A stretch of DNA of 64,000 nucleotides from Rebecca billardiae RCC1528 (Eukaryota > Protista > Haptophyta), in assembly GCA_965240325.2 (NCBI GenBank), contig OZ251230.1:1612001-1676000 (forward strand). The letters are read 5' to 3'. Both the position numbers and the translations under genes were made by a program. The notes beneath the pieces were generated by a model. That model was not told the origin of the DNA, did not search any database, and was given only the letters and a program-made list of their open reading frames with translations. Shown here piece by piece: positions 1,215-8,909 of this stretch (position 1 is the stretch's first letter; each line of letters opens with the position of its first letter).

Positions 1215-2620
1215 TCACGGGTGCGGCGGCGGCGGGAAGGGCCAGCGGCCCGCGCCGCCCGGCGGCGGCGCGCCCGACTGCCCCGGCGGCATGGGCCCGC
1301 CGTGCATGCCCGGCATCATCCCGCCCGCGCCCGGCCCGCCGCCCATGCCCATCATCCCGGGGAAGCTACCCATGCCCTGCGGCGCGCCGTACGGCAGCTG
1401 GCCGGGCGCGCCGCGCCCCGGCTGCGCCGCCCACGGCATCTGGCCCGGCGCTCCGTACGGCTGCAGCATGGGCGCGCACGCGTTCGGAGGCATGTGTTGC
1501 GCGCTGGGCATGGCGCCGCCCATGCCGGGCTGCTGCGGCTGCGGCTGCGGCGCGCGCGCTTGCTGGCTCTGCTGCGGCTGCGCCGCGCCGCCGCCCGCGT
1601 ACGCACCGCCCGCGTCCGCGCCCGCCCCCGCGCCGCCGCCTCCGCCGCGCATCGCCGCAGACACCATCTCGGCCGCGCGCTCGACCGCGTCCGCGCCGCC
1701 TGTCAGGGTGATGGTCCGCATCGCGCCAAAACCGTCCACCTGCGCGCTCTCGCGCGAGATTGCAATCTTGGCGCCGGCGCGCTCCTCGAGCGAGCGGATG
1801 AGCGCGCCGCCCGCGGCGAGCAGGCCGGCGGTCATCGCGGAGGGGACGCTCATCGTGTGCGCGCGCTCTTCGGCGCCCGCGCCCGCGCGCGCGCGCCGCG
1901 CGCCCCCGCCGCGCCGCGCCGCGCCGCCCGCCTCGTCAGCTGAGGACTCGGAGTCGGACGAAGGCGAGCGCTCGCGCCGGCGCCGCGCGCCGCGGCCGCG
2001 CTCGGGCGACTCGGACGCTCGGCCGCGCTTCGAGCGACCGCCGCTGCCGCGCTTCTTCCGCCGCGCGGGCGAGGGCGAGTACGAGCGAGACGAGCCACCC
2101 GAGTCGTCGTCGCCGTCGCCCTGCCGCCGCTTCTTGCGCCGCTGCGCGCGCACCGCGTCCAGCCGTTCCTTGAGCTCGCGCTCCTCGCGCGCCCACACAT
2201 CCTCGGGCTCGGCGCGCGCGGGCGGCATCGGCTCGCGCTCGCGCCGCGCGGCACGCGGCGGCGCGCTGCCCCGTCCTGGCTGCTCGGCGGCGCCGCCGCC
2301 GCCCCAGCCGTCCCCTGGACCGCCCATTCCCATCCCGCCCATCCCACCGCCCATCCCACCGCCCATCCCACCGCCCATGCCGCCGCCCATCCCACCGCCC
2401 ATCCCACCGCCCATCCCACCGCCCATCCCACCGCCCATCCCACCGCCCATCCCACCACCCATCCCGCCGCCCATCATCATCTGCGCCGCGGCAGGCATGT
2501 ACCCTGCCTTGCGCGCGAGCTCGGCAGCGAGCATGCCGCCGGGCGGCATGGGCGCGCCCGGGCCGCCATAGTCGGGCGGCATGGGCGGCGCGCCGCCGCC
2601 GCCGCTCGCCCAAGGCGGCA

Positions 2621-2657
<37 letters not shown>

Positions 2658-5301
2658 TCGAGCTCCGCCGCCACCGCCGCCGCCGCCGCCGGCGCTGACG
2701 CTGTCGCCGCCGCCGACGCTGCTGCGGCCCAGGCCCTCGCGCCGCAGCCACTCGCTCTCAAAGATCAGCTCGTTCGTCTCGACCGGCCCGAGTGCGTCCG
2801 CCTCGCGCGCGCGGCCGGCGGCACGCAGTTTTTCGAGCTCGCGCGTGCGGTCGCCCTGCTTCAGCCGGTCGAGCTCGGAGAGCTTCGAGCGCAGCAGCTG
2901 CTCGGCGCGCGCGCACGCCGGCGGGGGCCCGACCAGCGTGAGCGACTGCCACGGCTTCCCGTGCAGCATTTCTTTCTTCTGCACGATGACGATCTGGCAG
3001 CCTGTCGTCTTCTCGAGCTCGTTCACCTTCCGACCGCCCGGACCGATGATGAAGCCGACCGCGGGCGTCTGCAGCATGTACGCGATGCTGTGCTTGCCGG
3101 ACGCGGCGGCGGCGGCGGCGGCGCCGCCGGTGGCGCTCGGCGCGGCGGGCGCGCTGGGCTTCGGCGGGCTCGGCTCGGCCGCACCGGGCGGGCGCGGCGG
3201 CGGCGGCGGCAGCGGCAGCGGCAGCGCGGGGCGGCCGGCTGCGGCCGCGGCGTCGGCGGGCGCCGGCGGCGAGGGCATCGGCAGACCCGCGCCGCCGGCG
3301 GAAGCCGCCGCCTTCGCGACGGGCGCGGGGCCGGGCGGCAGCGGCGGCAGCTCGCCCGCGACGCGCCCCGGCGCGGGCGCCACGGGCGACGGCTGCTGCT
3401 GCCTGGCTGAGGCCATGGCGGGCGCGGCGGCCGCGGGCTTGTGCGGCGCGGGCTGCAAGCCCGCCCCGGCGGCGGCGCGCGCGCGCGGGTCGGGCGCGGC
3501 GCTGATCCGCGTGCTGCCGGCGGCGCCCGCCGCCGCGCACCCCGGCGCGGGGGGCGGAGGCTGCTCGCCCACGCCGACGAGCGTCTCCGAGGCGGAGTAG
3601 GACGAGTGCGAGACGCGCGCCGCCTGCGCCTTCGCCTCGTCCGTCTTCGGCGCGGCGCCGGTGCGCATGTGCGGCTGCGCAAAGTCGATGCGCTCGGGCG
3701 CGCGCCACTGCACGCGCGGCGTCGGCGCGGCGGGTGCGGCGGGCTGCTGCGCGCCGCCGTTCGCCTGCGCGCCCGCGCCGCCGGCTGCAGGCCGCTCCTC
3801 AGCGTCAGGCGCGGCCGGCGGCGCCGCCGCGGCGCTCGCGGCCGCAGGCGGCGCACCCGCCGGCGGCCCGGCGGGGTTGGCGCTCGCGAGCGCCTCGCGG
3901 CGGCGCTGCACGACGACGAGCGTGCGCGCAAAGTTGCTGCTGCTCAGCGCCGCGTCATCCAGCCCGTTGATCTGAGCGGCGGCGCGGGCGGCGCGAGCGG
4001 CGCGGACGCATCCAGGCGGCAGCCGCAGCAGGAGCAGGAGCGCGCGGCGCGGGCGCGGCGTGCGTCAGCTGGCTGGCTGGCTGCCAGGCCTCGCGTGCGC
4101 GGGCGGGCGCGCGCGGGCGCCGAGCGGGCCGAGCGCCGCGCCAGTGCGCCCCTGCCCGCCACCCGCAACCCGCCACCTCCGCCCGGGTCTTCGCGAAGAC
4201 GCGCGGCAGAACTTGCTGGCGGCCGCGCGGCACGGCGCGGCCTCTGCCCTCCGCCAGGCGACCGCGGCGGCTGGCCGTGCAGACGGGGCGTGCGCGAGAC
4301 GGGCAGGCCCCAGACCGTCGCGCCAGCGGCCGTCGCAGGCGCCGGACTGCCCCCGATCTGGGCGCGCGCGCACGCGGTGTGCCTCCCTCCCGTCGCACCA
4401 TGCGCTCTTGACTGGCGGCCGAGGCGGGCGCGCGCGCGCGCGCCCGCGCGCGGCGCCGCGCACACCTGCGCCAGAAGGACGGCGGCGTTCTTGGCGATGA
4501 GCGTCTTGACGCCGTCCGGCGAGGCGAGGTTCTCGGGCAGCCGCCCGCGCGTCGACGCGCGCACCTTCTCCACCACGCGCTCGCACACCGCGTTGTAGGG
4601 CGCGCTCGCCGCGCCACCGTCTTCGGTCAGCAGCTCGACGACCGCGTGGCAGATGTGCGTCGTGGCAAAGTCGCCGTGGTGGAAGGTGGGCGCGTACAGC
4701 GCGGAGGGCTCGACGAGGGTGTACCACGCGGCCGCTGTGCGCAGCAGCAGCCGCGGGTCTTCGTCGTAGTCGATACACCACTCGACCACCTGCGCGCGAG
4801 CGCCGAGCGCGACGCGCGTGCGCGCACGGCGCGGCGTGGGAGCAACATCGCATCAGGCGCGCGGCGCGCTGCGAGGGGCGGCCGAGCCCGCGAGTGCGCG
4901 CGCGCGCGGACGGGGGGCGCGGCGCGTGCCTGGTCCAGGCGCACGGGCAGGTCGGGCTGCCCGGGCGCGGCGACCGCGCCGACGACGGACGGCGACGCGG
5001 CGCTCAAGCAGATGCCGACGAGTGCGCCGTGCGAGTCGCGCATCTCAAACGAGGTGAGCTGGCGCGACGGGAGCGGGCTGCCATCCGTGCCGTCCGCATC
5101 CACGTCACCGTTGTACGCGGCCGGAATCTCGCTCTCTGGCACGGGCGCGGGGGCGCCGGGCGCAGCTGCCGCGGCCGACGCGGTCTCGGCGGCCGCGGCC
5201 GCGCCACCATCCGAGTCGACCGCACCGTCAAAGCTCGCGGTGGGTGCGGCGGACAATACGGGCTCGTCACTCAGGTCGGTCGGCTGGCCGACGCTCGACA
5301 T
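1215..5301 (-). CDS. DNMT1-type RFTS (replication foci targeting) domain + 2 KH domain protein with GGGM-repeat and RS-rich regions; predicted exons 5301-4930, 4789-4466, 3971-1215
   Basis: Spliced N-terminus LPSRQLTSFEMRD...VRLDQ|VVEWCIDYDEDPRLLLRTAAAWYTLVEPSALYAPTF...VLLAQ|INGLD..LSSSNFARTL fits the DNMT1-RFD pattern. KH1 has VGFIIGPGGRKVNELEKTTGCQI; KH2 has AGLLAAGGALIRSLEERAGAKIAI. Phase-0 GC-AG intron 4929-4790 and GT-AG intron 4465-3972 keep frame with ORF 1215..3911. Intron 2 could hide an extra exon. Confidence 0.75.
2337..2474 (-). repeat. 12-bp coding tandem repeat encoding (GGGM)n
   Basis: About 11 copies of CCCACCGCCCAT on the + strand, inside the KH-protein exon. Confidence 0.9.
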
Positions 5302-5665: not shown

Positions 5666-6612
5666 ATGATGATTCGCGCGTGGCTGCTCGCTTCGGCGCT
5701 GGGATGCGCGTGCGGCGTGCAGCTGCAGCGCTCGCGGCTCCCCACGCGCCGCGCCGCCACCATCTCGGCAGCCGTCGAGACGCAGCAGACTGACGCCGAC
5801 TACCAGATCGACCGCGCGCGGCGCTTTGCGTCCATGCCGCCCGTCATCCTGTGCTACCGCGATCAGCTCTTCGCAGACAACTTCCGAGGACGGCTGTGCG
5901 GGCGCGACGTCGACAAAGCCGAGTACCTGCGCGCACTCAAGACGCTCGCCGACGCCACGCCCGCGCTCGAGTTCAACGCGCACGAGTTTGTGGCGCGCGA
6001 CGACGGCTCCGTCGAGTACAAGGTGCGCATGACGGGCGAGCACACGGGCACGCTCCGCACCGACTCGACCGTCGTCGCGGCGACGGGCACACGGCTCATC
6101 GGCGACGTCGAGCGCGCGGTTGTCGCCTTCGACCCCTACGGCCGCGTGACGTACGTCGAGGCGGGCGAGGTCGTTGAGGCGCTGGACGACGAGGACAAGG
6201 CGGCCGCCGGGCGCAAGGAGGTGGAGGCCGAGCTGGAGGTGGTGGCGGGCGAGGTGGTGGAGGCGCAGGAGCGCTGGACCGGGCTGATGGGCTCCTCGGG
6301 CCTCCGCACCGCCGACGCGCACGCCGAGTCGCGCGGCGTGGAGAACGAGCTCCGCGCGCTCGAAATGCGCCGCGCACAGCTGCAGGTGCGCGCGCCGCCG
6401 TGTGCCGCTTGGCGCCCGCGCGCCGGACGCGGAGCGTGGGCGCGGGCGGGTCGTCTCGCGCGCCCTCTGACGTGCGCTCCCCGCCGCGCGCCGCGCCTAC
6501 GCGCGCCGCGCCGCAGCTCAAGCTCAACCTGCTTGTGTGCAGCAACACGGGCGGGCACGGCCACATCGACGGCGCGCTCCACGCGATCAGCGCCGCCGCC
6601 GCGGCCGCGTGA
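5666..6612 (+). CDS. SnoaL-like/NTF2-fold (ester cyclase-like) protein with predicted N-terminal targeting peptide; exons 5666-6385, 6517-6612
   Basis: Hydrophobic leader, then an R/S/T-rich segment, then LFADNF...YLRALKTLADATPALEF...VRMTGEHTGTL...ATGTRL...FDPYGRV, typical of SnoaL-like cyclases. GTGCGC...CCGCAG phase-0 intron. Confidence 0.65.
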
Positions 6613-7491
6613 GCTGCCGGGGCGTGGCTGGGGCTCCAGAGCTGCCGCGCGGCCAGGCTGGCCACGGGGGCGACGAGGGCCTCTGCCCGGAGACGCGAAC
6701 CGAGAGTGCCCGCCGTGCGCGCGATGACCACCAACTCGCTCTACTCACTTGACTCAGCCCCAGACGCCATGCCCATGGCCGCCATCGGCCATGGCGCGAG
6801 CCCCGTGCGTTGTTCGCCGAGCTATCTATACGCTGTTGGACATCGTTGAGTCCACGTCTTCGGAGTTTCGGAGTTTAACAGATTGGTGCACTGACGGTCG
6901 ACCAGGCCCTTTTAAGTCTTCGAGCGAGCCAACCGCCGCCTGCTGCACGCGGTGACACGATGTCCGCGCGGCCGGCGCGGCGTACGTCGTCGTATTATAT
7001 ATATATTATATTTGATCGATATATATATATATATATATATATATGAGTGTAACACTCGCGGCGCGACGACGGCACTCGGCAGCGAGTAAGAGTTACAGTT
7101 ACTACGAGCGAGACCGAGTCACTCATCACTGCGAGTCGTCGTCGGTGAACTCGGTGATCCGACAGTCCCGCGGGGCCCGGCCACACCGTCCCCGAGGTGA
7201 CGCCTGACGGACCACCACTCACCAGTGACTGACTAAGGTGACCGGTGCTAAGGCCCACGGCCACACGGTCTGACAACGGGCAACGGCAGCGCCAGCAGCT
7301 GCGTCCCCGTGGCCCGTCTCCGCCCGAGCCACTGCTCGCCCGCGGCTGCGGCCCCCGCGCCGGGCCGCGCCCCGCGGGCGGCCGCCCCGCCCCCCGGGGC
7401 GCCCCTGCGGGCCCCGGCGGCCGGCGAGCCCCCAATGATTAGCTAGCTAGAGGACGATGATGATCGACCGCCGTATGATACCTATATAGAG

Positions 7492-8790
7492 TCACAGGCT
7501 CCTCGAGCAGCCCGACGCCGCCGCGGTGACGAGGGCCATGATGCCGCAGGACCGGACGGCGTGAACCCATCCCGGCACGAGCGATGCCCATGCGCTCCAC
7601 AGAGGGCCTGAGACCTGAACTTCTGGCTGATGAATCGGCTCATCGGCGCGTGCGGCAGCCTGCTCGCAGTCGCGTGCGCGTCGGTCGAGCAGCTCGACGT
7701 GCGCATTCGTCGCCCGCGCGGCCGTGCTCAACCCGTGCACGTGCACGACCTGCTTTTCGGGCAGGTTGCACGGTAGCCGGCCGGATGCACGGTGCGCGGA
7801 CCGGTTCTCGTCCGTGCGGATGGCCGCTGCGATGCCAGCCGCGGAGTCGCTCGTTTTGGCCTGGCACTCCTCGAGCGAGCGCGAGGTGAAGTGGAAGAGG
7901 TGCAGGGCGCTATAGTCCAGCAGCTCGTCCACGCGTGCGGGGCGCACGCCCCGGGGCGACCTGGCTGTCAGGTTCACGTTTGCGCACTTGGGATGGAAGC
8001 GCAGGCTGGTCAGCGCAGCTCCGTACGGTCTGCCGTCGCGGAAGACAAAGTGTGGGTTCATGGTCAGGCCACGCCCGAGCCGCGCGAGCACCTTGCCCCG
8101 GCACATCGAGAGCGTGTGCGCTCCACGCATGACTGGAGCCAGCCTCGCGGCCGTGTACACGCTGGGCTCGAAGAAGGTCTCGCCGAGCTTCTCAACAGGT
8201 GGGCGCGGGTGGGTCGGCTTGCCGTCCGCGCGGCGCGTGTCGTACACGGGCAGCCTGGGCATGATCATCGCGTCGAGGTGGGCAGGCACCTTCGCGAGCA
8301 CCGTGCGCACATTCCACGGGCGCCATTGCGCCCCCCGCGCTGCCTTAGCCGCGCCCGGCCCCAACGGCGGCCCGAGGTGCAAGTACTCATCCATGTCGAA
8401 AGTGGCCAGCCAGCCGACATCCGAGGCTCGCTCGCTCGCTCGGAGGCAGTGCGAGATCGCTTCATCCTGATGGCTGACGCCAGCTTCCGACCAGAGAAGC
8501 ACGCGGGTGGGCGGCCATGCCCGCAGCCGCGCCAGCGTGAGCGACGTGCGCAGCAGCGCGAGCTCACCATTGAGGCGGTCATCGATGTACACCCACATCG
8601 ACGACACACCCACCCTGTGGTGGTACGCGGCGTGATGGAGGATCGTGTGCTTCTCGTACCTGAAGCTCGCGACCGCGCATAATCGGAGGGTGCTCTCCAC
8701 GCCTGTCGCCACGCGATCGCACGGGCCACCACCCCCAGGGACAGGCTGGCTGGTGCCGTGGCTAGAAGCCATCATGAGGCCGAGCAGCAT
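7492..8790 (-). CDS. Glycosyltransferase, GT92/GT2-like (GT-A fold, DxD motif)
   Basis: LCAVASFRYE...YHHRVGVSSMWVYIDD...Q..AISHCL...WLATFDMDEYL...NPH...LFHFTSRSLEE. Intronless ORF; start codon uncertain (first ATG used). Confidence 0.7.
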   Translation of the reverse strand: MLLGLMMASSHGTSQPVPGGGGPCDRVATGVESTLRLCAVASFRYEKHTILHHAAYHHRVGVSSMWVYIDDRLNGELALLRTSLTLARLRAWPPTRVLLWSEAGVSHQDEAISHCLRASERASDVGWLATFDMDEYLHLGPPLGPGAAKAARGAQWRPWNVRTVLAKVPAHLDAMIMPRLPVYDTRRADGKPTHPRPPVEKLGETFFEPSVYTAARLAPVMRGAHTLSMCRGKVLARLGRGLTMNPHFVFRDGRPYGAALTSLRFHPKCANVNLTARSPRGVRPARVDELLDYSALHLFHFTSRSLEECQAKTSDSAAGIAAAIRTDENRSAHRASGRLPCNLPEKQVVHVHGLSTAARATNAHVELLDRRARDCEQAAARADEPIHQPEVQVSGPLWSAWASLVPGWVHAVRSCGIMALVTAAASGCSRSL

Positions 8791-8909
8791 GCCGCTCGTG
8801 GTGTCTTGTCTCAAGATTGGGAGGCGGATCAAGCGTGATAAGCGCAGATTCGGGATTCCATGCCCACCGGCCGGTCAGTCCGACTGCTCCGGCCACCTCG
8901 GCTCGCAAG

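Follow-up and report, generated by a model that had tools for sequence, protein, structure and literature searches.

The question raised by this locus is whether an RFTS domain can share one polypeptide chain with KH domains, and what such a protein would do. To our knowledge, the RFTS domain is known almost only as the regulatory and targeting domain of maintenance DNA methyltransferases, and few other proteins that carry it, for example Raf2, have been studied. The gene in question lies on the minus strand, at 1215-5301, in a 64,000-nucleotide (nt) stretch of the pavlovophyte haptophyte Rebecca billardiae RCC1528 (contig OZ251230.1; hereafter the window, to whose full length all coordinates refer). 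Judged from its sequence, the product is a new combination of known domains, an RFTS module followed by two KH domains, that is conserved within one algal class. Our preferred reading, to which we give a probability of about 0.55, is that the protein would act as a nuclear adaptor that tethers single-stranded RNA (ssRNA), or single-stranded DNA (ssDNA), to a chromatin partner.

Exon structure and its conservation in orthologs

A preliminary description of the window had proposed three frame-consistent exons with junctions at 4930/4789 and 4466/3971. These positions proved exact, and an ortholog without introns aligns seamlessly over both. The exons and introns are the following (a slash marks each splice site).

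4930-5301, minus strand: exon 1, 124 codons, with the ATG at 5301-5299; encodes two acidic N-terminal motif copies and the first strands of the RFTS beta-barrel (PLPSRQLTSFEMRD...)
4790-4929, minus strand: intron 1, 140 nt, GC-AG, phase 0 (CAG/GCACGC...GCGCAG/GTGGTC)
4466-4789, minus strand: exon 2, 108 codons; encodes the remaining RFTS beta-barrel (VVEWCIDY, RTAAAWYTLVEPSALY) and most of the helical lobe
3972-4465, minus strand: intron 2, 494 nt, GT-AG, phase 0 (CAG/GTGTGC...GCTCAG/ATCAAC)
1215-3971, minus strand: exon 3, 918 codons plus the stop codon, a single unbroken open reading frame (ORF); encodes the last RFTS helices, an Ala/Pro-rich linker, KH1, a Gly-rich tract, an arginine/serine-rich (R/S-rich) patch, KH2, and a tail rich in G, P, Q, and M

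All three exons are in phase 0. The spliced coding sequence of 3453 nt encodes 1150 amino acids and has one terminal stop codon, at 1215-1217. The motifs on which the preliminary description relied were located where it had placed them: RQLTSFEMRD in exon 1, VEWCIDY and RTAAAWYTLVEPSALYAPTF in exon 2, IIGPGG in KH1, and LLAAGG in KH2. Retention of intron 2 shifts the frame and leads to a stop codon at 3944. A scan of intron 2 for bacterial-type promoters and terminators found nothing, a result that is uninformative for a eukaryote.

Two orthologous proteins were found by a word search with the KH1 region. P0002 (1060 amino acids) is encoded on a metagenome contig of the Joint Genome Institute (L001), and P0001 is a 541-residue model from Pavlovales sp. 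CCMP2436 (locus L002). P0002 carries both PF12047 (the Pfam family DNMT1-RFD) and PF00013 (KH_1), and P0001 carries KH alone. A single intronless ORF encodes P0002 (L001, 4417-7599). Aligned with the spliced window protein, P0002 shows no break across junction 1 (PVRLDQ/VVEWCIDY against PVRLGAVLEWCIEY) or junction 2 (AVLLAQ/INGLDD against ASLLAAQIGGLGD), and in this comparison it behaves like a natural complementary DNA for the window gene. The L001 ortholog has lost both introns and also lacks KH2. The start codon of the window gene at 5301-5299 is supported because P0002 starts at the equivalent position. Homologs of exon 1 are P0002 residues 4-78 and the exon-1 ORFs of L002, of the Logan contig L003, and of L005 and L007. 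On L001, the ORF is open upstream to 3901, and the called start of P0002 may be too far downstream.

The remaining loci retain the exon order. In L002, exons 1 and 2, the beginning of exon 3, KH1, and KH2 all have homologs, in the same order and on one strand; L003 has the three exons and two KH domains (KH_1, 92.8 bits); and the RFTS exons are present on the short contigs L005 and L007. Both introns occupy identical phase-0 positions in L002, L003, and L007, and intron 1 does so in L005, a contig that ends before intron 2; all of these introns have GT donors. The donor of intron 1 is GC in the window species (4925-4932) and GT in L002, L003, L005, and L007. We also considered an alternative GT donor for intron 1, five codons upstream of the GC donor, and rejected it; its use would remove VRLDQ, which is kept in all orthologs.

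Exon 3 supplies the final helices of the RFTS C-lobe (FARTLVVVQRRREAL) from the same ORF as KH1, and this arrangement of last RFTS helices and KH1 in one exon and one ORF holds at all four full loci. Therefore, the RFTS fold cannot be complete without the KH exon. From these comparisons, exons 1-3 very probably form a single gene.

The competing explanation is an artefact, in which a tandem pair of genes, one RFTS-only and one KH, is joined only through long chance ORFs in GC-rich DNA. The GC content of the gene region is 70-84%, and DNA of about 80% GC does give long chance ORFs. The single-gene structure is drawn from comparative evidence, and the deposited NCBI model of CCMP2436 (P0001; T492DRAFT_52922, 541 amino acids; L002:6798-10411, MU631433.1) holds the KH part only, omitting the two upstream RFD exons and the downstream KH2. 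The match of that model to the window protein, however, begins at residue 123; its first ~120 residues are unaligned and rich in R, P, and S, the composition expected of a wrong frame, and look like one. An RFTS-only gene would also have an incomplete fold, lacking the helices at the start of exon 3. Moreover, the intronless L001 ORF aligns through both junctions, order and frame are kept in four loci, and the linker between the two parts contains an in-frame conserved block. We consider two separate genes highly improbable.

The N-terminal RFTS module

The N-terminal module had been described as a DNMT1-type RFTS (RFD) domain, and profile match, ortholog fold match, and comparative evidence all bear this out.

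3888-5136, minus strand: complete RFTS module, spliced residues ~56-260, interrupted by both introns

Exon 2 alone matches PF12047 with 38.6 bits (E 1.4e-9; cutoff 22) over profile positions 70-143 of 144, and exon 1 scanned alone gives no Pfam match. The same family is found in P0002 (35.4 bits) and in the exon-2 ORF of L005 (35 bits). Hidden Markov model comparison placed both expected families, PF12047 and PF00013, above cutoff. In a PDB sequence search with P0002 residues 1-215, 13 of the 14 matches listed at E up to 10 were DNMT1 or MET1 (best E 1e-4), and the remaining one was a designed repeat protein (E 4.3). A profile built from the module together with its distant relatives matched MET1 at 2.9e-45 and the mammalian DNMT1 RFTS at ~1e-12, values that are partly circular, with true RFDs in the alignment.

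The fold was examined in a model of the ortholog, P0002 residues 1-215, which shares 43% identity with the window protein across the RFTS module. The AlphaFold model (predicted local distance difference test, pLDDT, 92.4; predicted template modelling score 0.83) consists of six strands followed by a helical bundle, and shows the two-lobed arrangement of a beta-barrel N-lobe and a helical-bundle C-lobe. In a Foldseek search, the top 18 PDB matches were all RFTS domains of DNMT1, MET1, or DIM-2 (E to 1e-9), and the next match had E 0.13. VIA-align superimposed 189 residues on bovine DNMT1 residues 368-588 (6pzv_C; Z 17.7, root-mean-square deviation 3.1 Å). The MET1 and DIM-2 RFTS domains gave Z 12-13.5, and the next fold Z 4.4. 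The comparison with the DNMT1 RFTS envisaged in the preliminary description therefore yields a strong match, for the model of P0002, and the module has a structure match as well as an RFD profile match.

The module thus resembles the RFTS domains of DNMT1, MET1, and DIM-2 in its above-cutoff profile score, in its two lobes (Z 12-17.7 over ~190 residues), and in its core motifs LPxRxL, EW(C)I, and AWYxLxxPSxxY. Its sequence identity to the DNMT1 RFTS is about 18-21%. Unlike in DNMT1, no methyltransferase, BAH, or CXXC domain follows the RFTS. Pfam scans found no DNA methyltransferase (PF00145), BAH (PF01426), or CXXC match in any exon, in keeping with the original claim that the methyltransferase domain is missing. 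PF00145 is also absent from P0002 and from L003 exon 3, and PF01426 from P0002. Whole-product Pfam scans of P0002 and L003 exon 3 returned RFD and KH-type families only.

At the N-terminus, we observed two short acidic motif copies on the minus strand, at 5224-5268 (DEPVLSAAPTASFDG) and 5107-5136 (ESEIPAAYNG), with an Ala-rich spacer between them. Each can also be recognised in the orthologs from CCMP2436 and L003, and the second sits at the place of the DNMT1 ubiquitin-recognition loop. Here, a conserved acidic loop (Y/H-D/N-G...D-G-S...PLP) lies at the structural position of DNMT1 loop 386-404, in a region where the alignment is unreliable. The loop ends in the conserved LP of PLPSRQL, and the equivalents of DNMT1 L402/P403 are kept.

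The KH domains, the rest of exon 3, and the neighbouring genes

Pfam KH_1 matches exon 3 with 72.6 bits over two stretches (cutoff 21.5), and NCBIfam gave sub-threshold KH-like matches alone. The features of exon 3 beyond the RFTS helices are the following, in the order of the protein.

3600-3719, minus strand: conserved linker block (PRVQWRAPERIDF...AQAARV), with an in-frame alignment to L002 and a similar stretch in P0002
2889-3062, minus strand: KH1, a type I KH domain with an intact GPGG loop; KH_1 43.6 bits when scanned alone
2724-2888, minus strand: KH1 extension, a long helix continuing KH1 and a conserved EWLRREGxGR motif
2319-2475, minus strand: (GGGM)n coding repeat with a 12-base-pair unit in 12.8 copies (Tandem Repeats Finder), within a tract of 43% Gly
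2121-2204, minus strand: charged helix ending in a basic RRKKRRQ patch
1932-2090, minus strand: R/S-rich patch (SRSYSPSPARRKKRG...RSPSSDSESSADE), 26% R and 23% S
1659-1856, minus strand: KH2, a type I KH domain with a degenerate AAGG loop; KH_1 39.7 bits when scanned alone
1218-1640, minus strand: C-terminal tail, low complexity and rich in G, P, A, Q, and M; the P0002 tail is similar in character

The elements that had been named in this region (an intact KH1 loop, a GGGM low-complexity tract, an RS-rich patch, and a degenerate KH2 loop) are all present, the last with a qualification. The KH2 loop is AAGG in the window species and does not meet GxxG, though it is GKAG in L002 and L003. As KH2 is absent from L001, this domain may be weakened or dispensable. 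The GPGG loop of KH1 is present in all orthologs.

The model of KH1 (pLDDT 81) has the beta-alpha-alpha-beta-beta-alpha fold, with a strand at 20-27, helices at 28-35 and 37-49, strands at 52-62 and 65-74, and a last helix from 76 that runs on for ~35 residues (model positions 76-110). Together with its extension (the A2 segment), KH1 is 60-62% identical in three orthologs. Its best fold matches are the KH domains of FUBP1, PCBP, Nova, and hnRNP K, with template modelling (TM) scores by target of 0.8-0.9. FUBP1/KHSRP, PCBP, Nova, and hnRNP K resemble the window protein in that KH1 is a classical type I domain with GxxG and finds its best sequence and fold matches among them; most FUBP1 sequence matches of the KH1 region show 33-38% identity. 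The FUBP/KHSRP family differs in having four KH domains instead of two. All FUBP1 matches carry PF09005 and other FUBP-specific families, which the window protein lacks, and the window protein bears an N-terminal RFTS module.

KH domains bind single-stranded nucleic acid, and FUBP1, PCBP, Nova, and hnRNP K are classical ssRNA/ssDNA binders. One alternative to our reading is that the ligand is ssDNA and not RNA. On this view, FUBP-like KH domains would be carried by the RFTS module to chromatin that is replicating or unwound, for example at replication forks, R-loops, or melted promoters. Among the KH domains closest to KH1 in sequence and fold (FUBP1, PCBP, and hnRNP K), many were solved with ssDNA, and the DNMT1 RFTS is named for targeting to replication foci. 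However, KH domains of the same class bind RNA at least as often, and the R/S-rich patch points to RNA processing; a dedicated ssDNA binder seems to us rather improbable.

R/S-rich and Gly/Met/Pro-rich stretches are characteristic of proteins that process RNA in the nucleus. At the matching relative place, P0002 too is rich in R and S. The (GGGM)n tract was not seen in P0001 or P0002 and is probably a recent lineage-specific expansion. The RRKKRRQ patch is likely a nuclear localisation signal, as its sequence suggests. The Ala/Pro-rich linker between the RFTS module and KH1 spans 258 residues, with the one conserved block inside.

Genes neighbouring the window gene were not found on L001-L003. 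The ortholog on L001 is flanked by rhodanese and Myb genes, and the window gene by a GT2-like glycosyltransferase gene and an ORF without a family; none of these is informative on function. The latter ORF (5666-6727, plus strand, 353 amino acids) lies divergently upstream and matches no Pfam family. The former (7495-8832, minus strand, 446 amino acids) has a weak match to GT2 / glycosyltransferase-92. Neither is syntenic with the ortholog loci. At ~6950-7050, an AT-rich simple repeat, seen as YIYIYIYI in two ORF translations, marks an intergenic dip in GC beside the GT2-like gene.

Relatives of the fusion and its possible function

We searched 1.84 billion representatives exhaustively by phmmer with the RFTS module and obtained 15 matches, including the query and exon-sized ORFs of orthologs. 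One of the matches, P0021, differs by one residue from the exon-2 ORF of the window. The rest were distant RFD proteins, all of them lacking KH: an enzyme of DNMT1 type that carries two RFDs, BAH, and methyltransferase; P0025 (Cyanidium caldarium KAK4535849.1) with RFD and a sub-threshold WSD match; P0032 (EukProt) with RFD and DDT; P0027 (Logan, 474 amino acids) with RFD and a bromodomain; and a quinoa protein with two RFDs. In the non-methyltransferase proteins P0027, P0025, and P0032, the module is homologous along its full length (P0027 aligns over query residues 5-200, including the LAQIxxLDD helix). They differ from the window protein in that their partner domains read or remodel chromatin and KH is missing.

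A shape search of the ESM Atlas recovered plant BAH + RFD clusters, an ascomycete RFD cluster, and a plant EDM2-type cluster (PHD + Mtase_EDM2 + RFD). In this last cluster (PHD_NSD + Mtase_EDM2), PF12047 is present in 78% of members, and the TM score to the model is 0.56. The Pfam-recognised partners of RFTS found in other contexts (methyltransferase and BAH, bromodomain, DDT/WSD, and EDM2-type PHD) are all linked to chromatin or DNA methylation. This distribution, with KH as a further partner, suggests that protists and red algae use RFTS as a mobile chromatin module.

Other searches added no relatives. The ESM Atlas feature search gave no usable match, metagenome contigs scanned with the KH1 alignment gave no confirmed relative, and a word search with P0002 residues 1-215 (8000 candidates) returned P0002 alone among the matches listed. 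In full-text searches, 'RFTS domain' together with 'KH domain' led to one unrelated review only, and no paper linked EDM2 with 'replication foci'. The architecture had been called unfamiliar among characterised proteins, and the literature search likewise gave no account of it. The RFD + KH architecture is conserved in at least three further relatives, the closest named being Pavlovales sp. CCMP2436. As far as the data go, it appears to be undescribed and confined to Pavlovophyceae-like algae.

For the nuclear adaptor, we propose the following mechanism. The RFTS module would dock on a chromatin-borne partner, possibly a modified histone H3 tail or a heterochromatin/DNA-methylation protein, by analogy with DNMT1, DIM-2, and Raf2 of fission yeast. 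Single-stranded RNA, most likely nascent transcripts, would be held by the KH domains, and the R/S-rich and Gly/Met/Pro-rich regions may recruit or concentrate RNA-processing factors.

Several observations weigh against this reading, in addition to the KH-only deposited model discussed above. Nuclear localisation, RNA binding, and the link to DNA methylation are inferred from the domains. The alignment used by AlphaFold included true RFDs, a possible bias of the model towards the RFTS fold. Furthermore, the analogy to DNMT1 is weakened in three respects. First, the DNMT1 RFTS binds zinc through a motif in its N-lobe (PMC5887372; 10.1101/2020.04.27.064493); in exon 1 there is only one Cys codon and no CxxC, and the structural alignment begins at DNMT1 residue 368 or later. 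Second, the DNMT1 EWW motif (human W464/W465) reads the H3 tail, with W465 stacking on K9me3 (10.1101/2020.04.27.064493). VVEWCIDY has EWC in place of the vertebrate EWW; only the first Trp is retained, with Cys replacing the second in the window and all orthologs. Third, mutation of DNMT1 Y399 and I442 abolishes ubiquitin binding (PMC5887372), and these ubiquitin contacts are without a conserved counterpart in the module, although the loop alignment is unreliable at such distance. With the zinc motif absent, EWC for EWW, and Y399/I442 unconserved, the comparison therefore establishes the fold of the module and not its ligand. This ligand is probably not read in the DNMT1 manner.

The missing zinc motif and ligand-reading residues would also suit an ordinary RNA-processing KH protein, in which the RFTS serves only as a protein-protein or self-regulatory module (dimerisation, KH masking) and has no link to a chromatin mark. 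The DNMT1 RFTS also acts intramolecularly, as an autoinhibitory plug (10.1101/2020.04.27.064493), and the Raf2 RFTS contacts Cul4 (PMC4121317). Yet the partners of RFTS that Pfam recognises elsewhere are without exception associated with chromatin or DNA methylation, and we regard a purely RNA-processing role as unlikely.

The nuclear adaptor can be compared with two known systems. Raf2 of Schizosaccharomyces pombe, a subunit of CLRC, is likewise a non-enzymatic RFTS protein, and we know of no KH or other RNA-binding domain in it. Its RFTS takes part in heterochromatin assembly by contacting Cul4 (PMC4121317). Our sequence searches did not recover Raf2, and they do not show orthology with the window protein.

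The second system, and the closest working analogy, is the plant ASI1/IBM2-AIPP1-EDM2 complex, in which ASI1 combines BAH with RRM. As in the window protein, chromatin-reading and RNA-binding modules are brought together, and in plants the combination acts on transcripts at heterochromatin. According to published descriptions, ASI1 binds RNA as well as chromatin and partners with EDM2 at intragenic heterochromatin (PMC9910501, PMC9292364), and the complex reads intragenic heterochromatin and steers polyadenylation (PMC9292364, PMC9910501). In contrast to the window protein, where RFTS and KH lie in one chain, reading and RNA binding are spread over several subunits. The likeness is an analogy, not whole-protein homology.

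A bolder proposal treats the fusion as a 'Rosetta stone', in which one pavlovophyte chain does the work of several fission-yeast and plant subunits. The KH domains would read nascent RNA, and the RFTS module, having lost the DNMT1 reading residues, would bind either ubiquitylated H3 or a complex of the ubiquitin-ligase or H3K9-methylation type. Such a chain could link transcripts to heterochromatin or to co-transcriptional RNA processing, possibly in a lineage that lacks DNMT1. We hold this proposal to be speculative and at long odds. If true, RFTS domains in general would have been tied ancestrally to RNA-guided chromatin pathways, before the domain was put to use in DNMT1.

The practical impact of the finding is limited, the family being confined to one little-studied algal class and its function being predicted only. 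For the biology of these early-branching algae, the fusion offers a testable handle on the linkage between RNA and heterochromatin or DNA methylation. Its conservation suggests that binding of single-stranded nucleic acid can be joined directly to a chromatin-docking fold.

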